A stretch of DNA of 64,000 nucleotides from Bugula neritina (GCA_964035545.1 OZ037773.1:9577751-9641750), one strand, 5' to 3'. Positions 3,677-53,627 are shown, counted from the stretch's first letter. Numbers and translations: made by a program. The notes: generated by a model from the letters alone, not told the origin.

Positions 3677-6600
3677 ATGGATTTGAGTTTCAAAATTATG
3701 TCAGAAGCAAGAATCGTGTTTCCATCAGATGATGGATTTACAGGTTTACCAGAGCTCATTCTTCGGGCTATCAACAATGAACATGAAGTTCAGGCAAGAA
3801 TACGCCTTACTGAGGCAGTGACAAATAAGCTTACTGAAGTAGTGGAACAAGTTGTAAAAAATATTTCCGAGACTAGTTTGTTTAACATTCTCGGTATAGA
3901 AGATGATAGTGGTAACACACTTCTTCACTTGGCGGCTTCGTTAAATCGCACAGAAATAATTGCTGTACTAGTGGGAGGTGTGTCACCTGGGAACCAGCGC
4001 TATTTATTAAAGTTGAAAAACAGAGATGGTAAGACACCTCTTTTATTAGCAATCACCCAAATGCATTTTGAAACTGCTCAATGGATTTTGAACTTGCCTC
4101 TACCCCATGATGATATGAAGGACATTGTAACTATTTCAAGCAAATTTGGCATTACAGCTTTGTCAGCTGCTACAGCTGCTGGCTCAACTGTTTTAATGAA
4201 ACGACTAATTGAAATTTTGGGAGATGGCTTGTATAACCAACTTTTGGTAACAGATCGTCAAAGAGATAATGTTTTGCATATTGCTGCAAACAACGGAAAA
4301 GGGAAAATTGCTCTATGCTTGCTACAGCTTATGGATAGAATTCAGGCAGCCAACATTCTTCAAATGGGGAATAGCAAAGGTTTAAACCCCATTGCATGTG
4401 CTAAAGATCAAGGAGAAGATGATTTTGTATCTGCTATTCAAGAATACCAAGGAAAAATGGAAATCACAACAAATGGTGAGCAAAACAAATTGTACGTTGA
4501 TAAGTATAGATAGATAATAATGTAGATGAGTATAGCATTATAAATATAACATTTTAATAAATTACTGCACAATTATTTTTGTAGATTTGTTGTGCATAAA
4601 ACAATTGTTTTTATATAAATTAACAGCAAAATTGAGGCTCAGTGATAGAACACTGGCCTAGTGAACATAAGGTCAGTCGTTCAAGTCTAAGTCATAATTG
4701 CTCTTGCGCCACATTAGAGAAAGTTCTTATATAGCCAGCTTGAGAAGAAACCCTTTTCATCACAGGTTCTCACAGGGGTATTGACAAATTTTTTTGATGC
4801 AAATTGTATAACATTTAAATAAGCTATACTAACTTTTAGCATGCTTTTGCAGGTTTCTATAGTATGCAAACAATGATGAAATAAGTTTTTAGATTTTGTG
4901 GTCAATTTTCATCAAGAGTTACAAAAATCTGGATCAGTTGATCTATATAGAGCAGTGGTCCTCAAGCTTTTTCACACTATCTTCCCTTTCATACACGTTT
5001 ACTATTAATTTTCTCTTTCAAAAATTGCAACTTATGTGTAGTTTAAAAATACTGACGTACTGTATGATACAAATTTATATTTTTCTATTATATTCTATAA
5101 TAATATATTGGTTGCAAGATTATTATACGTGAAAACGCACAGAGCAGCTCAATTAGTAATGTTATGGCTGCAGCGTATGCTTTTGCGCCAGCTTGCTCAG
5201 TATGGCTCTCTTTTTGACAGGGCACATCTCAGGTTACTAAGCAAGTCAAGCCAGTCTTTCATTTCACTTTGAATAGTTAGCATTGATGAGATTCTCACCT
5301 TCCATAGATGGGTTGTGCACCAGATTTTTTGGTTTGTCAGCTATGCAAGAATAGATTTTGCTTGTTGAAACCCATAGGTCTTCTTAATTGGTAAAGATTT
5401 TATTGTGAAATTATCAAATATGTCGATTAAATCTTTTCAACAGAGCATTGAAATAAGCCATATGTTAGTTTAAGAATCTTCTCCTTTTCTAACAGTATCT
5501 CTCTGAGCTATCAATCAAACTCTGTTAAGATTTTAGAAAGATGCTCAGAGATGTTTTGAAAGAGAATGTGGAACAGTTGCTTTTCCTGGTAATTTATTGA
5601 ATGTGGGGAACGACATCATATTTTTATATGAGCTGTGTGTCTGTTGCAACTTCAGTTTAAATTTGAAAGCATTGATGCTGCTATATGAAATGCAATGATA
5701 AGACTATTTTAATCATGGTTGTATTTATTACAGAACAAGTTCCGGCTGCTGAGCAAAAAAGAACTGAAAATGAAATTGATGGTGAGTTGAGTCGAAAAAA
5801 TACAGTTTTTGATTAAAAGGGTGCTAAACCAAATATAGATTAGATTAAAATAGATGCCGGTGCTTAATATTAAGTGGCGATATTCCAATTTTGCAAGTTT
5901 AAAACTTACTTTAATAATTGTTCACCTATTTAAACATTTGTAAATGCTTATGATTATCAGCAGCTTAATAATAACCTCTGCCTGAGTCAGCGGGCCCAGC
6001 TCATATATTAAAACTTTTAGAAAAAAGAGACATTTTTAATGAATTTAAAGTTATATCTGCTTCAGAATTCACTTTCCTCAACGTTAGTTTTGCTCTAACG
6101 GCTAACCAGTCATATCCTAACTATAAGCTAATTATCCTACAGTAATATTTTAGAACTTTACTTTACTTAACTTTACTCTGCTTTACAAACTTAAAAAGTA
6201 TATTCAGCTAAATAGTCATATAAACATGGCCATCAAAAGTCTCGCAAAAAAGTTTTTGGAAGTCAAGTCTCTGCACAAAACTGAATTCAAATTTTAAACA
6301 GCTCTGACCAAACTCAACACTCAATATAGTTGGCTTGTTTGTTGTACCAGTGGGCTTCAGCAACAGAAACTGCTTAAATTGTTTTAACCAGTTCATCAAG
6401 CTGATAAATGCGCATTAATTTGGCTAGTAAGAAAGTGTAAGATAACAAGCCGCAATATACGAGAAAGTAAAATAAAGTCTATAAAAGCAGTCATAGGTAC
6501 ACACGCACACGCTGCATCAGTCAATCAATTGTGTTTAAAATTTGTTGAAGAAATCGAGAATAATCTTTTATTGCTCAAAATGAAATTCATGTTCTCAAAG

Positions 6601-37200: not shown

Positions 37201-40200
37201 CGTAGACTAGATACTATTATCAACATAAACATTTACTTGTGTGACTTCAGCTGGGAGAGCTTCAGATGTGACAAAACTCCGAATAGCCGCAGTTTCTGCA
37301 ACATCTCTAGTGATAGTGGGGGTGACACTGGCCACCCCCACACTGTCCAACTGGGCCACAGTCTTGAGTGAAGTTTTCTCTTTCAGTGGACGTAGGCAAG
37401 CTCCGTAGCCTAGCGGCTCAATGTACTGTAGAAATAGAATTGTGAGAGTATAGCAACCTGAGTCTGATACAGTGCAATGTGCTTATTGAAATGATTTCAT
37501 ACTTGCAATTCATTAGATGAAAGTCTTACATATGAAACAACAAACATATTTGTTTTCGATTAGATAGTTAAAATCATATACACAACTTACACATGTACAT
37601 ATACATATACACATGTACATATACACTTACAGGAAGTGATTCTGAGTCGATTACTTCAGATTTATCTTCTGCCAAAACTTCAGCTAAAATAAACGCTATA
37701 TATAAACATATTAAACAGTAATAATATATAAACACATTAAATAGTAACCATATATAAACATATTAAACAGTAATAATATATGAACATATACAATACTTGT
37801 ATTCCAGCTATTGAAACTATTTCATACATTTAGGCATTTCTTTAGTTTGATTTTTGAAGCAATAAACAAAGAAGTAGAGATAATGTAAATACTGAGATAC
37901 TCATTCATAGACACATAAAACATGAGATGAAAATTAGCCAATCAGAACAGCTGATACAAGTTACTGACTAATAGCAGGAGACATGGAGACACGCCTCCTA
38001 TGCGAGCCTTTTCTTCGTGTCCTGTTCTTTTTGAGAAGAGATTTCAGTGGTTTCTGCTGACTCTGTACGACAGCGCCATCAGATATAGCCATCTGCAGAG
38101 GAGGCTGACTAGAGAGAGCGTGCGGGGAGGGAGTAGTACGTGCAGACACCGGTACTGAGTATATCTGTCTAGGAACTGGGCTAATGTTCTGCTGGGTCAA
38201 GGACAACGACCTCTTCTGGCTGAGTTGCTGACTCAGATTAGTTGATAACCGACTGGACCTCTAGAGATCAAATGAGTATGAGTTTAGAAAAGATCAATGT
38301 AAGTGAAATATGAGTGTACTAATAACTATGAGTATACTAATAACTATGAGTATACTAATAACTGTGAGTATACTAATAACTATGAGTATACTAATAACTA
38401 TGAGTATACTAATAACTGTGAGTGTACTAATAACTGTGAGTATACTAATAACTGCACTGACTCACCTCGGGTGTTGCTTGTTGAAGTACTATGGACGGAG
38501 TTCTCGCTTCACTCCTGCCAACAAATAGATATGATATTGTCAGGACACAGTAATTGCATTGCGGTAAAATGATAATCTGTGAATCCTTCATAATAAACCT
38601 CCAAAGAAATGCTAGTTAAGATGTGGATATCATTACTAACTGCATGTGTTACTATTGTCAGTTTTCTACTAGTAGTGTTAGTAAGTTTAATAAGATGTGG
38701 AGCTTAGCCTTAGGTCTAATAGTATTCTAACAGCACCCAGCTACAACTACGTAGTATGTAGTTTATGCAGAAAACGAACTGATATAATATATTCGTTCAT
38801 TTTATTATATTATATTATAGTGCTGTGAAGAGAAATATAAATATTCCTTAGAGGTGTGTGGCGTCAGCACAAACGTGAGGTATTTGAAAGTCTTACGAAA
38901 TTATTATTTAATAAAAAATCTTCTCTTTCAGCAATTTAAATAGATTAAATATAAAACAGTTAGCATTGATAGGACAAAATTCCAGATTAGTTTCCCTCAT
39001 CCTAGCCAGAGAACTAGTAGTATAGCCTACAGATCTACTTACATCGTCATAGACAGTGACAGATCAGGAGGGGTGGACGGCCGAACGCTTCCCACTGACA
39101 TCAATCTATCGGCAGTCTTTCCTTGTAAGGATGAATTCTGTTGCAACTGAGAGAAGTTTCCTGAAAGAAACTGAAATTATGAGAAGTTATCTTCTCCAGA
39201 GCAGAGGTATGATGAGACAACTCCCACTAGAAAGGCTGTAAAGCAGCGGCAGAATTAAATGTATAGGAGGGATTTTCACATGCTAGCAATTTCAAGCTAC
39301 AGAGAGGTGAGACAGTGAGGTGATACAGTGAGGTGGGACAGTGAGGTGGGACAGTGAGGTGGGACAGTGAGGTGATACAGTGAGATGATACAGTGAGGTT
39401 AGACAGGGAGGTGATACAGAGAGGTGGTACAGAGAGGTGGTACAGAGAGGTGGTACAGTGAGGTGGTACAGAGAGGTGATACAGTGAGGTGGGACAGTGA
39501 GGTGATACAGTGAGATGATACAGAGAGGTGATACAGTGAGGTGATACAAAGAGGTGATACAGTGAGGTGATACAAAGAGGTGATACAGTGAGGTGGGACA
39601 TTGAGGTGATACAGTGAGATGGGACAGGGAGGTGGGACAGTGAGGTGGGACAGGGAGTTGATACAGAAAGGTGGGACAGTGAGGTTAGACAGAGAGGTGG
39701 GACAGTAAGGTGGTACAAAGAGGTGATACAGTGAGGTGATACAAAGAGGTGATACAGTGAGGTGGGACATTGAGGTGATACAGTGAGGTGGGACAGGGAG
39801 GTGGGACAGTGAGGTGGGACAGGGAGTTGATACAGAGAGGTGGGACAGTGAGGTTAGACAGAGAGGTGGGACAGTAAGGTGGTACAAAGAGGTGGTACAG
39901 TAAGGTGATACAGTGAGGTGGGACAGAGAGGTGGTACAAATAGGTGAGGCAGGGAGATGATACAATGAAGTTCAGGCATGACATGAGACATAGCAGCAAG
40001 TGAATAGATGATGTCACAGGAAGTCTTACCAGCTGCAGACGACTTTCTCAGTGACGGTAAAACAGCTTCAACTGGTTTCAAGGGTCCCTGTTTACTGCTT
40101 TGGATGCCAGAGTTCTTAGACAGACCTCTGGTAAGTCTGCGGGGTGTTACAGACCCCCTTGAGAATGCTTTCTCGGGCTTTTCTGATGACTTCTGTAAAT

Positions 40201-41005
40201 TTTGAGTTGCTTCAACAGGTTCCCCTCCAGCTTGTTCCACCAGGTCTGTATTACCAATCTGGTCGCCAGATGATTCCAACGCAGGCTCCTGTTGACCTGC
40301 CATGTTCACAGTCTTAGAGCCGCTCCGTTCCACTCCTTTCTGGTTCACACCGTCACTTCCATCTCCTTGAGGATCTTTAGTCATGGAGGGAGAATCTGAG
40401 TCAGCAATCGGCTTCTCAACAACTGAAGAGAAATGTCTAGCTGGTTTCCACATTGGAGACTCGTTCTGAGGTCGGGAGGAGAGAAGAGCACCCTTCCCGA
40501 CGGCCTCTTCATCAGCAGACGTTCTGCGCAGAGCATCTAGTGGGTTTCCTTGACCTTGAAATGGCCTTGACTGAGGTCGAACATCAAAGTGTTGCGGTTG
40601 ACCTAACAACACAGACAGCTAGTTTGAAATACTCCCTCAGCACGCTAATCATGTATTTAAATTTATGTTGACTTAAATATGAGTCATAACTGTCTAGCAA
40701 ATAATTAGTGAAAGACTTTACAGGTACACCAACAACGCTCATGCAATAAACATGACTTTGCTGTTTTAGTATACGAATTGAGCAGATTTTAGCAAAACAT
40801 AAATTGTGATACTAGAGGGTTGCTGAAAAATACTCAAGTTTTAATAAAATACAAGTTCTTTTACAAACTAAAGAAAAATCCATTGCCTCAAAATAAATGA
40901 ATATACAATCATATCACTTACTTCTGAAACAAGTAGTTAAGTGAAGGTAAGTAAAGATAATAACTTACCTAAGCGCTTGGGGCCACAGCTGGGTGTACAA
41001 CCCAT
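34277..41005 (-). CDS. Uncharacterised ~809-aa Ser/Pro/Gln-rich, probably disordered protein with N-terminal MGCxxS acylation motif (12 exons)
   Basis: Exons (minus) 41005-40969, 40602-40030, 39160-39043, 38514-38466, 38260-37969, 37683-37631, 37425-37237, 36918-36727, 36248-36093, 35782-35621, 35426-35046, 34504-34277. All GT-AG, phase-consistent, 2430 nt with no internal stop. Confidence 0.8.
38309..38455. repeat. 18-bp intronic minisatellite (TATGAGTATACTAATAAC) x~8
   Basis: Direct inspection; lies next to the donor at 38465. Confidence 0.95.
39297..39960. repeat. 13-bp intronic minisatellite (CAGTGAGGTGRKA) x~50, with a 169-bp higher-order duplication
   Basis: Direct inspection; 39548-39716 is repeated at 39717-39885. 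Confidence 0.95.
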
Positions 41006-41551
41006 AATTAGAGACTGGAATGTAATTACATACACTAGACTACATGCTGTGAACAATCAATATGGAGAATATTCAACATTTCAAGTGAAATATTACAACA
41101 CCAGATGACTTTGTGTCTAAAGAACTCGAGGCATTACTACAACAATACAGTAAAGGTTATTATAATATAGATACAAGCTCCGGCCAATCATTGTCTTGCT
41201 TACATTATCAACACTTTTCAGATTAAAAATCATATTTTTTTATTAAATTCTCGAGACTATCATTTCAAAATAACATTGTAACCAAGAAATGTCATTTAAT
41301 ATGTTCGTATGATTTGCAAAATAATAAAAAAACACTAGTTTTGTGAAGAATTAGCCAATAAATTTATATAATTTAATGCAATAACTGTAACTTATGCCTA
41401 AAAGACAACATGTATGCCATGTTAAAAAGCTCCACCAGCACATAAGCTAATCAACTGAGCTTTACTGTACAATTGTTCGGATTCACAAAGCTAATAGCTT
41501 TCATTATATCATTCCATCACCGGGAGGGTCTAACACCACTCCTAAAGTTCC

Positions 41552-44500
41552 TCAACCCTGCTCTAAGGATTTCAGTCTGAGGCTTTCTTTCAGCTCCCTA
41601 ATTCTTTCATCAATTTCTGTGAGTGACATATCCTGAAGATAAACTATCCAATCAGCTTGCAGCAGAGAACTCGGTATATTGTACAGTAGAATCCACAGTA
41701 TATTATATAATAGTATATAACACATTATAGTACATACTATACTGTACATTATATAGTATGTATATCACATAATAGCCTATGGCATCTATTATATCATATA
41801 ATATATTGTAAAATATACATTTATTCATATATTATATTTATCAGATAAACTTTATCATTATAACAGGGATTAGTGCATACTAATATACATAATATATAAT
41901 ACTCTAAACACAAGAGAGGGAACAACTCTAAACACAAGAGAGAGAACAACTCTAAACACAAGAGAGAGAATAACTCTGAACATAAGAGAGAGAACAACTC
42001 TAAACACAAGAGAGAGAACAACTCTAAACATAAGAGAAGGAATAACTCTAAACATAAGAGATGGAATAACTCTAAACACAAGAGAGAGAACAACTCTAAA
42101 CACAAGAGAGGGAATAACTCTAAACACAAGAGAGAGAACAACTCTAAACACAAGAGAGGGAATAACTCTAAACACAAGAGATGGAATAACTCTAAACACA
42201 AGAGAGAGAATAACTCTAAACACAAGAGAGAATAACTCTAAACACAAGAGATGGAATAACTCTAAACACAAGAGAGAGAACAACTCTAAACACAAGAGAG
42301 GGAATAACTCTAAACACAAGAGAGGGAATAACTCTAAACACAAGAGAGGGAACAACTCTAAACACACAACTGTTGAATATTACTCACCCTGGTGCTGGCT
42401 GCTATAGAAGGTGTAGAGTTGTTATTCTTAGTCTGAGATTCAACTTCCTGTAAGTAAAGATGTATAATTAGTCGCTAGGACACCCTATACTGTGTACAAT
42501 AGAATATAGGAATCATTACTATATCTCTTTGTGCTTCACATTTTCTCAACAACAAATTTAATATCTGGTTGCAGAGGCACAGCCACACAGAGTAAAGGCA
42601 CTGCCACACAGAGTAAATGCACTGCCACACTGAGTAGAGGCACAGCCACACAGAGTAAAGGCACTGCCACACAGAGTAAAAGCACAGTAACACAGAGTGA
42701 AGACACAACCACACAGAATAAAGGCACAGCTACACGGTAAAACTATAACTCACTGATGAGTCCTCTGAAGCCCTGGACACATGAGATTTGATGTGAGGAT
42801 TAGTGAAATATTCAGGAGTTATGCTCTCCAGGTGGAGAATTCTGTCTTCCAGTAGTTTTATTCTCTCTATTACAGAATGGTTGGAGCCTACAGAATATAA
42901 TGAATATGATATTGGCAGTGTAGTTAGTGTGTAGTTATTGTGTAGTTAGTGTGTAGTTAGTGTGTAGTCAGTGTGTAGTTAGTGTGTAGTTATTGTGTAG
43001 TTAGTGTGTAGTTAGTGTGTAGTCAGTGTGTAGTTAGTGTGTAGTTAGTATGCAGTTAGTGTGTAGTTATTGTGTAGTTAGTGTGTAGTTAGTGTGTAGT
43101 CAGTGTGTAGTTAGTGTGTAGTTAGTGTGTAGTTAGTGTGTAGTTAGTATGTAGTTAGTGTGTAGTTAGTGTGTAGTTAGTGTGTAGTTAGTATGTAGTT
43201 AGTGTGTAGTTAGTGTGTAGTTAGTGTGTAGTTAGTATGTAGTCAGTGTGTAGTTAGTGTGTAGTTAGTATGTAGTTAGTGTGTAGTTAGTGTGTAGTTA
43301 GTATGTAGTCAGTGTGTAGTTAGTGTGTAGTTAGTATGTAGTTAGTGTGTAGTTAGTGTGTAGTTAGTATGTAGTTATTGTGTAGTTAGTGTGTAGTGGT
43401 CGAATGACTATTAGCTCAACTCACTCGAAATCTCACAATGATTCTCCAAATCACGAAGTCTACCTTCGATGTTAACTCCAACCTGATTGGCTTCTACATT
43501 GCTAGGTACTCCCTGATTGGCTGCTTCTTCATTGGCTATAGTCTGTGGCCCAAATTGGTTGTGAACAGAACTAACTAAAAAGAGGAACAATATTCAGTCA
43601 CACAGACAGACAATCTACGCTGATGTAGTGATGAGTGAAGGTGAGACGCATACTGAGCATGTAAATCGCTACCAGATACCAGACTGGCCTTCTGTAGTTA
43701 CTTGGAAGAACTTATTTTAGCTATATGGACAGCTCAACTTTAAACAAGAAAAGCATGAAAAACGTTGACTAAAGATACTAAATGAATAAATTACTTGACT
43801 ATCATGACCAGATTAAGGAACTAAAATTAAGATGCCAAATCACTACTCATGCAACTCTACCTTTGAATCGACTCTTGCCGTGTACAGGAAATCTTGTGGC
43901 GTCAACTCTTGCGCAGGAGGTATGATTGGCCGGCCAAGCATCAGTTTTGGGAATCTTAACACCACAAAATACCTCTATGTTCCTCTCATCAATCTGGGCC
44001 CGTTTCCGGGAGCAGAACGCATTTATTCTAGCGTGCATCTACAAAACATCACCACGGTAACAACTAAACAATATGTAATGTAGTTTAATATAATACTCTA
44101 GGCTATAGATAGACGGAATTTGGAAACTATAAACAGGTTGTTTAAATAATAAAGCAATCAAGGGCAGGCAACTATTACAGACTCAAGTGAAGTAAGTTAC
44201 TATCAGACAATAAGCCACACACTGGCAAGCTGAAAAAGAAGAAAGAGCATTCATAGACACATACAAATTTGTATTAAAATGAGAGGAAACTCTTCAACAG
44301 AAGTGCGACTGAATTCCATGTTGTTTAAATATAGTAAAGCACATACACTATTATATAATCTAGTAATATGCACACACTCCTGCCCATATATACACACCGC
44401 AAGCGCACGCACACGCACACACCTATATATGTATGTATTTTAGTATATCATTGTCAAACCACTTTGATATAATAGCTTTCATTGACCAGCCGACTAGACA

Positions 44501-46663: not shown

Positions 46664-47387
46664 TCAACCTATTAATCTTCATCCTACATTATTTGATGTA
46701 GCTAGAGCCACCCACATACCTATGAAGAGATAACGAAGTGGAGCTAGACTGTGAGCTGATACGACTTGTACCATTGTACCGGGTGATTATCACTACTCCC
46801 CAAGCAACAGTTCTCTTGAAATTTAGTCTATTTAAGCTTGATAGCCTTTTCCATAAAGCCGGTTGGCTGCATATTGTAACTTATCTATACGGTTACACAC
46901 AACTGGGTGGTTAGGTGATTACAGTTGAGTCCTGAAAGGTTAGTAACAGCTCTGTATGTGATACTTCAATCTCAGGTGTGTAACAGCATTATATTCATTA
47001 AAATATAAGCTTTCATTCTAAATTGTATAATCATTCTGAAATGTTGAGCATTGATGCATGCCTAACATGTATCTTTTTGAGGAAGCTAAATTGATTTAAA
47101 CGAATCTTTTGGGACTAAGTCAGTTCTGTTTTCCAAGAAAATTGGGATATAAAATTATGTGTCATTGTTTTATAGAAATATACACACTGAGATTTGCTTA
47201 TTGCAATTATTGCTAATGCAGTTACCAGGGTTATTCATTATTGTAAACAACTTTGATAAGACACTTGACTTGTGACATATCCAATGACACACCAGGTCAT
47301 GTTCTCTAGTGCCTGCTGTATATATAAACACGTCTCTCAATGCATTGTGATATTCTTGTAGTCCAGGGAGTAGAGAATAGAGCAAGC

Positions 47388-50300
47388 ATGTCTTACACTG
47401 TAGAGAACATTGTGAGTATGGATATGTTGTTGCATGTATTCATTAATAGTCTATAGTTAAAGCTATAGCACACATCTACTGCAGTAATTAAGCTAGAGAT
47501 AAAATCTTGATTAGGTATTTGCTGTTTATTGCAGCAGCTTTCATACTATATAACCTGTATAACCTATATATCCTGTATGGATAGAAATAAACGACTCGGT
47601 TTTATGTATCTCTTAGATTTATAGTTTTATAGTAAAAAAAGATTTTGTTGCATGTAAATCTATAGATTATTCAGTGGTGTTTTAATGCTGTGTAGTTTTA
47701 GCTAGTGCTAGCATTCCCTAGTCTGAGATTCAGCCTCTCTCTAGACAGTATATTCAGAGTAACACTCTTGTAACCTGTGGCCTGTTTCAGTTAAATAACT
47801 AAATGTAGAAGTATAGTCTTATGAAGATGTGAACTAGTAACTGGTGCATATATTTGCATACTTCACATAAAATTACTGTAACTGCTAATATATTTAGAAT
47901 ATTTATATCTCACATTCTACTTCCGCATTCTCCTAGCTGGTTGTTATAACAGAATAGCCTTAATCCTACCTACTAATAATACTTAGGGTTACTAGAGGAG
48001 GGCTTCCCAAATTTACTAAATTTCTAAGTTACAGATTACTTGTCATGTTTTGTCATGGTTCACTCATTTTTATCAAAATGAGTGATTTATGTTTAACCTC
48101 TTGACTACAAGAATCAGCAGTTACCATATGTTTATGTATGTGCATTACAGTATGTATATACAGTGTGTTACCTACAACATAGTATATACATTACAGTGTA
48201 TTACAGTATGTATAATTACAGTGTGTAGTGAAACTGTATACATGTATAATTACAACATGCAGATGCTATTCTTTTGCTGTTCATTGCATAGTCTAGTATC
48301 TTAAGCCCATCAGTAAATATCACTATACACAGTGAACTTAAGGGTGTTTACTTATTCCCTACTCTATGCATGCTAATTGGCTGAATGGGGTGGGTGGATC
48401 CCTGTATGTACAACCATTATGATTATAAGTTAGTTATGGTTATAAGTTATAGTTATGTCAAGCTAGTGCAGGTGAGATAGTCTCATATCTTCTGGAGTTA
48501 TTCCTTTAAAGATGCACTTAGTAATAGGTTGACCTCCATTTAAATCTGTGACCTTTCACAATCATCCTTGACCCTTCAAATTATTCCTTGACCTTTCACA
48601 TTAAACTTGGCATCAATATTTTTTGTTTATTGTTGCTAATCTACCACTGCCTGTTGCTATAGTAACAGCAACTTACTTCCTGTATTCTACTTCCTGTATT
48701 CTACTTCCGTTTGCAGAGTCTGCCATTTTGTCAAGCGATACCAAACAACCTCGGTGTTGGAGATGAGGTGGTGGTGAGAGGAAAAGTGAAGAAACATGCA
48801 GAGAGGTGAGACAGGCTTGTATAATGTGTAGCCTCTATCATCTTACTACATTATGCAATGTTATGTAATATTATAATATATGCATTATGTAATATTATAA
48901 TATCTGCATTATGTAATATAAGAATATATGCATTATGTAATATAATATAATATGCATTATGTAATACTATACAATGTTATATCTACTCATATAATACAGT
49001 TAATAAGCTTATAAGTAGTTAATGGTGAAAGATTTAAATATGCTGTTCGTGTATGTTTTATGTCATATAAAGTAAAGCACAGGACAAAGTGCTCAAGTAT
49101 TTATGCTGCAAAGTAGGTTGATGTGTGACTCACATAGCACTGTGTGTTACACCACGCAATGCGCTGAAGAAGGTCTTAAATGCTGCACTGCTAGGAGTGG
49201 TTGTAGAGTTATCTTATCAGTTGACGTCTCAATAGAGGATGTAGAAAGCTAATTTAACCACTCGGCCAGTGTCTTATCTCACAGTGTTGTCCCATCAGAC
49301 TCAGTTTATTGTTTTATAATCGGATGTTTGATATTGTAACCCAAGTTCTTGTTATATATACACATTGGTGTGTGCGGCTAGGTATCGTCCCTATCTTTCA
49401 CTGTATATTCAATGCTATAGTTAGATTTATGACTCCACCTTCAGGCATTTCACCTCTCAGCTTATGATCATTGCTCCATTTTAGAGATTTATTTACTGCT
49501 GTTGTCGTTTTGCAATATTCATTTTAGAATCTTGTTAACTAGCAATTCTCTTTGGTATATGTTTTGCCACGGATTTGTTCTTTTTAAAAGTTCTGCATGA
49601 TTCATCTTTTCTGCTGTAGATTTCACGTGAATCTGCAGACATCAGATGGTGACGACAGCGATAACGTGTCCTTCCACTTCAACCCTCGTCAGAACCAGGG
49701 GGAGGTAATAAGGAATTCCCGAGTGGACGGTGAGTGGGGAGAAGAAGAGACTGACACCCCCGACTTTCCCTTTGGTCCTAAGGCTAGCTTTGAGATTAGA
49801 ATCATATGCACTGAGTGGAACTACGTGGTGAGTTTATCGATTTGAGTTGTACTTGGTTGAATGAGTCATACTTGATTAACAGAGCCATACTTGATTACCA
49901 GAGTCATATTTGAATAACAAAGTCATACTTGATTAACAGAGCCATACTTGATTAACAGAGCCATACTTGATTAACAGAGTCATACTTGTGTATGCAGGTG
50001 TATGTGAATGGCTCGCACTTCTCTAACTATGACCACAGAGTTGTACTTGATTGACTTGAGTTATGCTTGGTTGACTTGAGTTGCACTTGATTAACAGAGT
50101 CGTACTTGTGTATGCAGGTGTATGTCAATGGCTCGCACTTCTCTAACTATGACCACAGAGTGGACTTGAGATCTGTCTCCCACATCTTTGTTGACGGAGA
50201 TGCCAAATTCACCGACATCGGCTTCAAGGCCCACTTTGTAAGTGTCTATACTCTAGAGTATATTTATATGTACATGTAACCTACTCTGTAAGTGTCTGTA

Positions 50301-53300
50301 TGTATACAGGTAACCTACTTAGTAAGTGTCTGTATATGTACATGTAGCCTAATTTCCTACTTTTTGTACACAAGATTGGAGCAGTAGATCAACCTCTCCC
50401 CTCTGCTTCTGCTCAATTATGATTGGATGCCCTTCGGCATACCATAACCTGGTGACAGCGGCCATTTATTTACTTATTTATTACGTAATATCTTCTCATC
50501 ATCTGCTGACACTAGAAGGTGGGAGCATTCATTACATCGGCTAATAAGTAGTGCCAGTCCAGATCTACACCTTTCTAGGGAGTTGCCTTTCCAGTCACAA
50601 TTGGCCATGTCTGTGACATAGGACTGTAGTTGTGGTGATTCAACTAGTTCAAGGCAAGGCAGAGGATAAATAAAGCGGAATTTGTTTTTAAAAATGAAGT
50701 CTGGGCCATAGAATTTGTCTGCCTATTGCTTTGGAGTTTTGAAACTAGGGACTAGCATGTTTTCCCTGTATAATTCTGTTTATTTAACTTGACTGATGGG
50801 TTTGTTAGCAGCATTCTAATACATAGGTGTATAGGTTTAGTGTAACCTGGTAAATATGCAAGACTATAACATTATGATATGGCTACATGAAGTTTCTCAT
50901 GTAATAAACAGAAATTGAACTTTTTGTGTTATTTTCGACACAATATTTTCGATACTAAATTTCACAAGATTTTGGGTCCAAAAGAAAGTAGCCTACTAGT
51001 TGATGTGTTTTTCTTATCACTTATAAGCATCACTACATGCTTCTTTCAGGGTGCTAGATACAAGAGTATCATTCCACACGAGTTGGTTCCAGGATCCTGG
51101 GTTATGGTTACCGTGGCAACTCACCAAACGCCTCACAGGTGCAGTATTTTACCTTCTCAATATCAGCCAACTTTTCGCGACTGATTAGCAGTTGTCTTAT
51201 CAAGTATAAGTGTGTCTGTTGATTGGCAGATTTGATATAAACTTGAACAACGAAGACGGAGATGAAGAGAGGGCCCTTCACTTTAACCCCCGCTTCTACC
51301 AAGGTGAGACGGTGAGGAACAGCAAGCTAGGCGGTGACTACGGCGATGAGGAAACAGACGGAGGTTTTCCCTTCGAGGCGGGAAAAGTCTATGACATCGG
51401 CATTCAAGTTCAAGAAGAATATTACAAGGTACGTGCCTTCATGGTGTCTTCATGGAACTGAGGTGATAACTCCTGAATCAAGCCTTCGTATATTCTCTAG
51501 TTAATAGTAACTCTGGATATAGTTTGCTCGCTGTCGTTATATGTTCTATTTGTTGTCTTTACGCGCTAGTCGCTGTCTCTATACTCTAGCTGCTGTCTTA
51601 ATACTCTAGTCAATGTTTCTATCCTCTAGTCAATGTTTTTATATATTCCAGTTGCTCTCTGTACACTCTTAACTTATATTGGTATTACATTTACCTGTCC
51701 AGGTGTACGTGAACGGGGAGCCATATGTCTTGTATGCCCACCGAAGTGCTCCTTCCGACGTGCACTTTATGACTGTCAACGGAGATGTCTCTGTGCTGGA
51801 TGTCAGATTCCTCGGTGCCTTCGTAAGTGTCCTTTGTGTGTGGAGGTTAATCATGTTCTGTGCCCACTCTATACTCACTAGATCCCATTGTGTAGGAGTA
51901 TATTATGTTATGTGAACAGGTAGATAATACATAATAATCTGGCATAATAATATTTTCATTAGATATATACCGTATGCCTACCTGAAAACTGGATAGATTT
52001 TATCATTTCTAATTTGTGTAAAGAAAGAAAATATCCCAAAGTGTAGAACACTTTGGATGCTCTGATATATTCAGCCGCTGCCATAGATGTTACGCTGTCT
52101 CTGTTTACTCTGTATCTACGCTGTCTCTGTTTACGCTGTCGTTTATTCACACAGGAAGACAACACGTACCGCCCAGTTCCAGGCCTCAAGGCTGGTGATC
52201 AGGTGACCATCATTGGCTCCGTACACGATGATCCTGAAAGGTATGCACTTCGACCAATCATAGCAAGTATAAAATATCACAGAGCTTCCCTTACATTGGC
52301 TGTTACTTTATTACCTCCTTTTTTCACTTCCTTTTCTCTGCTCACACAATAGTGGCTCTCAATGTTATTGGGACTTTTCATCTCTTGCAAGCTGCTGTTT
52401 ACCATCTTCTCTTGTGTTTATATTCTCAAATGAGCATTTTTGATAATTAAAGTATGATTATCATAGTAGCAGCAGCAGCAGTAGCAGTAGTAGCAGTAAT
52501 AGTGGTAGTGGCTGTGGTAGTAGTAGTGGTAGTAGTAATGGTTGTGGTAGTAGTAGTAGCAACACTATTTTAGTTGACTTTCTGCTCTGTTGACAGAATT
52601 GTGGTGAATCTTCAAGGTAAGACACCTGATGAGTCATCTTCTAGCTCAGACGAGGAGGAGAGACACACAGACATCCCTCTGCACTTCAACCCTCGCTGGG
52701 ATGAAGGTTTGTAAGGCCTCTTGTCATTGGCTAGTAACATTGTGTCAGTGTACCAAACTACTCTACACACATTTACTAAACTACTGTACATACATATACT
52801 AAACTACTGTATATACATGTACCAAACTGCTGTACATACATCTACTAAACTACTGTACATACATGTACCAAACTGCTGTACATACATGCACCAAACTGCT
52901 GTTCATACATCTACCAAACTACTGTACATACATCTACCAATTTGTTGTACATACATGCACCAAACTGCTGTACATACATTTACTAAACTACTGTACATAC
53001 ATCTACCAAACTGCTGTACATACATCTACTAAACTACTGTACATACATGTACTAAACTACTGTACATACATCTATACCTGATACACCGAGACTCATGTTG
53101 GAATCTTATGCCTCAGGTGAGATAGTGTTGAACACGTTTAAGAATGGAGAGTGGGGGGACGAGGAGAGATACCCCCTACCCGAGGCGTTCTATCCGGGCA
53201 GACAATTCCATATCATATTCAATGTCGGAGACGACGACTATGAGGTGAGAAACTCGGTCTATTGCTAGATGATTTGTAATTAGCAGTTGAATTACCTCTG

Positions 53301-53627
53301 CTTTGTTTTTAGTTCTCTAATGCCTAGCACCTTCTCATTGCATTATTAAGAGGTTATTTTTGTATTTCAATGTATAAAATGTTTAAAATAAGGTACAAGC
53401 TGTATGCTATTCTCTGTACTAGAAACAGTCTGTTTCAATATATAATTATATAATATTCGTGCTATTTTTAGATATTTGTGAATGGAGAGTATTTGGCCAA
53501 CTACGGCCACAGAATAAAGTCAAAGAAAGTCCGGTTCATCCAGCTGGCTGGTACAGCTTACTTCAGCTCCGCCAAACATTCTCAGAACGCATATTACATC
53601 AGCGATAATGGCTTCCTTTATCGATAA
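47388..53627 (+). CDS. Galectin with three tandem CRDs (442 aa, 11 coding exons)
   Basis: Exons 47388-47411; CRD1 48717-48805, 49620-49827, 50118-50237; CRD2 51050-51138, 51230-51428, 51703-51822; CRD3 52155-52240, 52597-52706, 53117-53244, 53472-53627. All phase-consistent (1329 nt). Each CRD has HFNPR, VxN, [WY]GxE and [YF]VNG..YxHR. No signal peptide. Confidence 0.92.
49845..50117. repeat. 19-bp minisatellite (ACAGAGYCATACTTGATTA) containing a partial duplicate of galectin exon 4 and its acceptor
   Basis: 49982-50040 is nearly identical to 50102-50160 (120-bp offset). Confidence 0.9.
52749..53076. repeat. 23-bp intronic minisatellite (CTACTGTACATACATCTACCAAA) x~14
   Basis: Direct inspection; occupies most of the CRD3-specific intron. 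Confidence 0.93.

Follow-up and report, generated by a model that had tools for sequence, protein, structure and literature searches.

Gene structure and transcript support

The 64,000-nt stretch of Bugula neritina DNA analyzed here (GCA_964035545.1, OZ037773.1:9577751-9641750; hereafter the window) is AT-rich eukaryotic DNA and carries, at positions 47388-53627 on the plus strand, a gene for a galectin whose carbohydrate-recognition domains (CRDs) are three in number. An earlier note on the sequence had read this locus as a single gene for a compact, trivalent galectin with three complete CRDs and essentially no linkers, lying outside the known galectin classes and having arisen either when a three-exon cassette was duplicated or when a four-CRD ancestor lost one of its domains. 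We re-derived the gene model from the window sequence, covering exon coordinates, sizes, phases and local splicing. The whole gene has 12 exons, of which 11 are coding; the introns between the coding exons are all GT-AG, and the translation gives 442 amino acids with a lone stop at the end (Table 1). The phase-0 introns that had been placed at the domain junctions, KAHF/GARY between CRD1 and CRD2 and LGAF/EDNT between CRD2 and CRD3, were recovered exactly, as were the near-identical exon sizes of the first two domains (89-208-120 and 89-199-120 nt), which follow a first coding exon of 24 nt. The third domain is encoded by 86-(110+128)-156 nt, its middle exon being interrupted by an additional phase-1 intron. 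The spacers between the three CRDs, projected from hidden Markov model (HMM) coordinates, amount to 6 and 5 residues, in agreement with the near absence of linkers; this compactness is, however, best read as a legacy of a four-CRD lineage, as argued below.

Table 1. Exons of the three-CRD galectin gene and associated repeats, in window coordinates; L008 denotes the transcript contig described in the text
Feature	Position	Length (nt)	Strand	Content or basis
Non-coding 5' exon	46912..46938		+	L008 nt 1-27, blastn 96%; GT donor 46939
Rest of 5' untranslated region (UTR) and first 8 codons	47362..47411		+	ATG 47388, MSYTVENI; L008 nt 26-77 aligned to 47360-47411
First coding exon	47388..47411	24	+	
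CRD1 exon a	48717..48805	89	+	Splicing model, Pfam, transcript alignment
CRD1 exon b	49620..49827	208	+	HFNPR...IRN...WGEEET; PF00337 positions 29-93, E=5.8e-18
CRD1 exon c, end ...KAHF	50118..50237	120	+	Splicing model, Pfam, transcript alignment
CRD2 exon a, start GARY...	51050..51138	89	+	Splicing model, transcript alignment
CRD2 exon b	51230..51428	199	+	HFNPR...VRN...YGDEET; PF00337 E=4.1e-16
CRD2 exon c, end ...LGAF	51703..51822	120	+	Splicing model, Pfam, transcript alignment
CRD3 exon a, start EDNT...	52155..52240	86	+	Splicing model, transcript alignment
CRD3 exon b1, Ser/acidic loop insert and HFNPR	52597..52706	110	+	Splicing model, Pfam, alignments
CRD3 exon b2	53117..53244	128	+	VLN...WGDEER; PF00337 E=5.4e-07
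CRD3 exon c, 13-16 residue tail and stop	53472..53627	156	+	TAA 53625-53627
Decoy partial copy: 3' splice site and exon-4 start, inside intron 3	49997..50050		+	Unused in L008
33-bp tandem repeat across the stop codon	53599..53668		+	2.1 copies, 94% match

The homologue search, run with an exon-3 query against a library of 1.84 billion representatives and followed by a word search with one of its products (P0098), returned a transcript that covers the gene from end to end. Logan contig SRR21130501_841861 (1383 nt, locus L008) encodes a product of 453 amino acids, P0174, which is 98.6% identical to the model across residues 1-442 with 0 gaps, and the blastn alignment of the contig to the window breaks exactly at the predicted exon boundaries, from the 5' UTR to the stop codon. 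The gene is therefore expressed, as this spliced public contig documents, and the claim that the three CRDs belong to one gene stands; the source of the contig is a sibling lineage and not the same individual. The 11 extra residues at the start of P0174 were discarded, as they begin at a TTG in the 5' UTR that reflects a bacterial-code call; the window has CTG at the corresponding codon, which leaves the ATG at 47388 as the start. The beginning of the non-coding exon at 46912 is that of the transcript contig, which leaves the true 5' end of the exon undefined. The 5' UTR is split by an intron of ~420 nt between 46938 and 47362, and since there are a non-coding 5' exon and a 5' UTR intron, a TATA-like tract at 47320-47330 is intronic and not the promoter. 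At the other end of the gene, the second copy of the 33-bp repeat contains the last codons and the stop again, now within the 3' UTR.

Orthologous sequences also came from further sources. P0173 (443 amino acids, encoded by a JGI contig of 1823 nt) is full-length and 79% identical to the model, and the partial P0098 (276 amino acids, JGI contig of 1079 nt, L003) aligns to residues 167-442 at 80% identity with no gap. Both have the same C-terminus and stop as the model, and the tail and stop position are also conserved in P0175, the protein's closest named relative, which comes from the cheilostome bryozoan Watersipora subatra. Past the stop codon, L003 continues with ~250 nt of non-coding sequence. 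Two genomic contigs from an ENA metagenome, L004 and L006, carry orthologous exons 2-4 and 8-11. Comparison of the model with L008, on which the selection estimates rest owing to saturation of synonymous sites against L003, gave dS = 0.25 and dN = 0.0058, corresponding to a nonsynonymous-to-synonymous ratio ω of 0.023. The values for the individual domains are 0.009 (CRD1), 0.035 (CRD2) and 0.030 (CRD3), and these low ratios indicate that all three domains are kept by strong purifying selection.

Domain content, fold and sugar-binding residues

A per-exon search with the Pfam profile PF00337 (Gal-bind_lectin; 132 positions, cut-off 22.1 bits) showed that the exons tile the profile three times, with the middle exons scoring 65.1, 59.1 and 29.6 bits for CRD1, CRD2 and CRD3, respectively; the transcript product P0174 also matches the profile. 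Among themselves, the three CRDs are 32-38% identical, the highest value being that of CRD1 and CRD2 (38%). Using the three CRDs of the protein and CRD4 of seven relatives as tblastn queries, we found no further galectin sequence in the whole 64-kb window apart from a decoy of 54 nt, in line with the earlier failure to detect a fourth CRD. The decoy reproduces the splice site and the first ~43 nt of exon 4, lies 120 bp 5' of the real exon and is set among 19-20-bp minisatellites (49863-50092); a reading frame continuing from it meets a stop after ...HRVVLD. L008 matches the decoy at 87% vs 93% at the real exon 4, indicating that it is the downstream copy that is spliced. Galectins usually lack a signal peptide, and the N-terminus MSYTVENISLPFCQAIPNNLGVGDE, judged by eye, shows no hydrophobic core.

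To model the structure, we used P0174 as a natural proxy for the protein. AlphaFold2 predicts three beta-sandwiches (mean local confidence pLDDT 87.5, global score pTM 0.67; 36-sequence alignment), with the last 10 residues below pLDDT 50 and disordered, and with an insert in CRD3 at lower confidence. The single CRDs of the model superpose on solved galectin CRDs with template-modelling (TM) scores of 0.86-0.94 and root-mean-square deviations (rmsd) of 1.1-2.7 Å. Structure comparison with the P0174 model returned no solved structure with three CRDs, and superpositions of two domains at a time on solved galectins give an rmsd of 7-12 Å, indicating a different inter-domain geometry.

Sugar contacts were assessed at the eight canonical positions (H-N-R / V-N / W-E-R) by alignment to galectin-9. 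CRD3 retains all eight (H N R V N W E R). CRD1 retains six of them (H N R I N W E T), with a conservative change of Val to Ile and replacement of the last Arg by Thr, and CRD2 likewise six (H N R V N Y E T), with Tyr in place of the stacking Trp and again Thr in place of the last Arg. The other four bryozoan sequences, that of Watersipora among them, have the Tyr of CRD2 as well, whereas the stacking Trp is kept in 16 of 16 CRDs of the four named four-CRD relatives introduced below and in 4 of 4 of an additional one, P0022. The last Arg position is variable throughout the four-CRD lineage. Mutagenesis of galectin-1 is reported to show that losing the last Arg strongly weakens lactose binding, while the change of Trp to Tyr is milder. 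The residues at these positions suggest a multivalent glycan-binding protein in which the three sites are non-equivalent, with CRD1 and CRD2 probably binding differently or more weakly than CRD3. Because CRD3 is the one domain with the full canonical set, 'trivalent' is a presumptive label for the protein.

An insert in the loop directly before the HFNPR strand of CRD3, KTPDESSSSSDEEERHTD, is encoded at 52615-52668 within exon b1 and may represent an acidic phospho-serine cluster. This bryozoan-only insert recurs in conserved form in P0173, P0098 and Watersipora P0175, and none of the four-CRD relatives has it.

Relation to four-CRD galectins

The best full-length match of the protein is galectin-4 X1 of the brachiopod Lingula anatina (XP_023933621.1, P0008), with 38.7% identity between residues 8-430 of the model and 31-440 of the match, followed by the four-CRD proteins of Patella (KAK6181409.1), Owenia (CAH1791780.1) and the scallop Ylistrum balloti (XP_060077888.1). 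These four-CRD galectins are 29-39% identical to the window protein over its whole length. In the multiple alignment (MAFFT), its three domains line up in order with CRD1-3 of the four-CRD galectins. CRD1 of the window protein is 48% identical to CRD1 of Lingula, which exceeds its identity to CRD2 of the same protein. The N-terminal MSY is common to Patella, Owenia and P0022, as illustrated by MSYTVENISLP in the window protein and MSYQVNRISAP in Patella; like the window protein, the four-CRD galectins have no signal peptide. The spacers are also similar, measuring 6, 6 and 6 residues in Lingula and in P0022, 7, 6 and 6 in Patella and 5, 6 and 7 in Ylistrum, compared with 7-60 residues in most other three-CRD proteins and a median of 30 in two-CRD proteins. 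Characterized relatives include the quadruple-domain galectin of Argopecten irradians and the oyster CvGal, both named in the reference lists of PMC8878817 and PMC5877582.

The exon structure follows the same pattern. The Lingula gene (L007) consists of exons of 24 / [69, isoform-specific] / 89-205-120 / 89-193-120 / 89-205-120 / 89-205-114 nt and thus has in common with the window gene the first coding exon of 24 nt, the 89/~205/120 cassette and the phases 0/2/0. As all four Lingula cassettes are alike, the similar exon sizes of CRD1 and CRD2 are no sign of a recent duplication. The middle exons of the window gene and of the four-CRD galectins are of the S3-F4 type, which scallop galectins also carry (PMC10343441, section 3.3).

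Unlike the four-CRD galectins, the window protein has three CRDs, with CRD4 absent and no relic of it, an extra intron and the Ser/acidic insert in CRD3, Tyr in the stacking position of CRD2, and a C-terminal tail of 13-16 residues. A CRD4 relic was sought in the window downstream of the gene, in L006 and in L009 of Watersipora, with no match. The tail ...YYISDNGFLYR was considered as a remnant of the CRD4 exon containing VYVNG; the support for this came from a forced MAFFT placement only, and the idea was not adopted. The window protein is therefore a derivative of the four-CRD lineage and not itself a four-CRD galectin.

Per-CRD phylogeny, which the earlier note had proposed as a check, places each domain with its counterpart in the four-CRD galectins, with moderate support. 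We built two quick trees and one careful, unrooted tree (38 rows from a set of 73 CRDs, 133 columns); the careful tree omits chelicerate and vertebrate sequences, unnamed two- and three-CRD proteins, the long-branch P0081 and P0048. The quick and careful trees agree on the positional grouping. In the careful tree, CRD1 of the window protein pairs with CRD1 of Lingula (support 86/67) inside the CRD1 clade (85/72), CRD2 falls into the CRD2 clade (84/86) and CRD3 into the CRD3 clade (93/95). CRD1 and CRD3 together form a starred clade (96/86), with the CRD4 clade (83/87) outside it and containing zero bryozoan members. A two-CRD paralogue from the same genome groups elsewhere. Approximately unbiased (AU) tests rejected the placement of the window CRD3 with the CRD4 clade (p=0.012) and a single clade of all bryozoan CRDs (p=0.002).

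Other galectin loci and further features of the window

The genome has three galectin loci, all on contig C9 and none with four CRDs. The two-CRD paralogue at G000:C9:248784-251796 (L001 5785-8800; C9 248.7-251.8 kb) combines a near-canonical first domain, CRD-A, containing WGQEEK, with a degenerate CRD-B in which FNYGQ replaces FNPR and Tyr replaces Trp. The locus at 8.27 Mb (G000:C9:8273443-8273778, L002) gives a weak PF00337 match of 35.7 bits with two internal TAA stops and may represent either a pseudogene or a diverged CRD split by an intron.

Watersipora P0175, annotated at NCBI as '32 kDa beta-galactoside-binding lectin lec-3-like', is an orthologue, 71% identical over residues 108-442 of the model, and resembles the window protein in the Tyr of CRD2, the CRD3 insert, the C-terminal tail and the stop. 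It differs in that the first 80 residues of the prediction are not galectin-like. Its gene model spans 26.7 kb (L009; OY755159.1, 77044643-77083374), and a search of the 24.8 kb upstream failed to turn up CRD1 exons a and b; CRD1 of Watersipora is either mis-modelled or truncated and decaying.

Elsewhere in the window, an open reading frame (ORF) of 278 amino acids at 3677-4513 on the plus strand encodes ankyrin repeats (PF12796, E=1.2e-18) and is unrelated to the galectin gene. In the block at 38000-44000, GC content rises to as much as 42.5% and GC skew is strongly positive; several long, overlapping ORFs on its minus strand give no Pfam match, and the block resembles coding sequence that is rich in repeats or of low complexity.

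Origin of the three-CRD arrangement

We consider the locus to be one expressed three-CRD galectin gene that descends from the four-CRD lineage and lost CRD4 in cheilostome ancestry, and assign this reading a probability of about 0.72. The ancestor would have been a four-CRD 'quadruple-domain' galectin of the lineage of Lingula, Owenia, Patella and scallop. Loss of its C-terminal CRD4 most likely preceded the divergence of the sampled cheilostomes, and the bryozoan protein would correspond to the retained CRD1-CRD2-CRD3, with the short spacers and the 89/~205/120 cassette inherited rather than newly made. Given that each CRD groups with its positional counterpart, CRD4 is the one that is missing. 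Of the two origins initially offered, the loss of a CRD from a four-CRD ancestor is thus better supported than cassette duplication because of the colinearity, the spacers, the exon cassette, the per-CRD tree and the AU tests. By analogy with the galectin family, the product may function in glycan cross-linking or recognition. Other multi-CRD invertebrate galectins serve immune recognition.

Several observations weigh against this interpretation. Whether CRD4 was lost or gained hinges on the rooting of the tree and on the place of Bryozoa among the phyla with four-CRD genes, and the bryozoan sequences sampled are those of cheilostomes, with the other bryozoan classes outside the sample. Support for the positional clades is moderate, CRD1+CRD3 being the only starred clade on 133 columns, and the pairwise scores of CRD3 are ambiguous, with 84 bits for CRD4 of Lingula, 77 for CRD3 and 75 for CRD1. 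Forcing CRD1 and CRD2 into a sister pair costs 14.3 log-likelihood units, and the AU test gives no formal rejection of this pairing (p=0.09). In addition, the RNA nature of Logan run SRR21130501 is deduced solely from its intron-free contig, and sugar binding and biological role are argued from family resemblance.

A different emphasis, which we put forward tentatively as a possibility short of an even chance, is that the four-CRD galectin was reshaped in cheilostomes into a three-CRD protein that divides labour among its domains and acts as a heterovalent adaptor and not as a simple trivalent cross-linker. CRD3 would then provide a canonical beta-galactoside site beside the conserved, possibly phosphorylated Ser/acidic loop, CRD2 would rely on its conserved Tyr where a stacking Trp is otherwise invariant, and the absence of the last Arg from CRD1 and CRD2 could have opened new, non-lactose specificities.

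With regard to the direction of change, the opposite of CRD4 loss would be that three CRDs are ancestral and that brachiopods, annelids and molluscs gained CRD4 once bryozoans had split off, which we regard as unlikely. The unrooted tree and the lack of a detectable CRD4 relic in three bryozoan loci would fit such a course; however, the CRD4 clade lies outside the CRD1+CRD3 clade, in which the bryozoan CRD1 and CRD3 are nested, so that any root outside these clades would make CRD4 older than the CRD1/CRD3 split shared by bryozoans. Moreover, four-CRD genes are found in three phyla, and on most published phylogenies these phyla form no group that excludes Bryozoa.

Somewhat less plausible still is a two-CRD galectin that reached three CRDs through duplication of one three-exon cassette within bryozoans. 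The similarity of CRD1 and CRD2, the closest pair in the protein, their near-identical exon sizes and the AU test that stops short of rejecting them as sisters speak for such a duplication, but the tree puts each CRD with its positional counterpart in the four-CRD proteins, the constrained topology loses likelihood and the monophyly of all bryozoan CRDs is rejected. CRD1 is closer to CRD1 of Lingula than to its own CRD2, similar exon sizes recur in all four Lingula cassettes, and the two-CRD paralogue of the same genome groups elsewhere. An artefact, in which neighbouring genes were read as one or a fourth CRD went missing through assembly or annotation error, is very improbable: apart from the fact that the earlier model was built from DNA alone, nothing favours it, and it is contradicted by a single spliced contig that takes in every exon between its start in the 5' UTR and the stop, by the independent full-length P0173 and partial P0098 from other species that share their ends, and by the non-coding sequence after the stop in L003.

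Comparison with known three-CRD and multi-CRD galectins

The view that the protein lies outside the known galectin classes does not hold. The sea cucumber AjGal1 (PIK56913) is a described three-CRD galectin (PMC10343441, section 3.2), three-CRD galectins have been reported as rare cases in lophotrochozoans (2018, Dev Comp Immunol 82:7), and the Watersipora orthologue is present in NCBI. By HMM count, 51 sequences, one of them the model, have three CRDs out of a set of 173 that comprised 150 representatives and 22 cluster members besides the model, with named examples from scorpion, horseshoe crabs, spider, two Holothuria, scallop, land snail, frogs and fish. Rescanning confirmed three PF00337 domains in 8 proteins, 7 of them named (scorpion, horseshoe crab, spider, two Holothuria, scallop and snail), the frog and fish figures being those of the HMM count and outside this rescan. 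The bryozoan gene is thus a fairly ordinary addition to the galectin family, of which the overall picture is unchanged. A full-text literature search for galectin with bryozoa returned no bryozoan galectin study, and this seems to be the first time that a galectin from a bryozoan has been examined. Its value lies in providing a clean, transcript-backed case of domain-number change within the lophotrochozoan multi-CRD galectins, and the Trp-to-Tyr change in CRD2, conserved across bryozoans under strong purifying selection, poses a small testable question on galectin specificity.

The related-protein search also yielded chains of 9-26 CRDs. P0001-P0007, P0010 and P0013-P0015 are galectin-repeat giants of 1100-3800 amino acids with 7-21 matched CRD stretches, the HMM maximum in the set being 26. 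At the level of the single domain, the window protein has the same CRD fold as vertebrate galectin-4, -8 and -9 and nematode Tl-gal (PDB 4HL0), the best matches among solved structures being 3VKL, 4HAN, 3WV6 and 4HL0. These proteins differ in having two CRDs, which in the vertebrate galectins are joined by long linkers, and their inter-domain geometry is not superposable on that of the window protein.

Closer in overall build are AjGal1, the Holothuria proteins P0024 and P0038, the chelicerate proteins P0018, P0025 and P0037 and the scallop P0028, which like the window protein have three PF00337 CRDs in ~440-510 amino acids. In these proteins, unlike in the window protein, the CRDs group among themselves, as seen from the sister pairs formed in the trees by CRD1 and CRD2 of the holothurian proteins and by CRD1 and CRD2 of P0028, and the linkers are longer, at 7-54 residues. 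The AjGal1-type arrangement of echinoderms and chelicerates, whose CRDs make up groups of their own that include recent internal duplicates, has the same domain count as the bryozoan one and an independent origin. The protein of the land snail Candidula unifasciata (CAG5115697.1, P0040, 414 amino acids), an unverified gene prediction, has three CRDs with spacers of 6 and 6 residues and belongs to the same four-CRD lineage; its domains group with CRD2, CRD3 and CRD4, so that it is the first domain that is absent, not the last. The three-CRD state has thus arisen several times by different routes: the bryozoan gene most likely lost the last domain, the snail prediction apparently lacks the first through loss, and in holothurians and scallop domains were duplicated internally.

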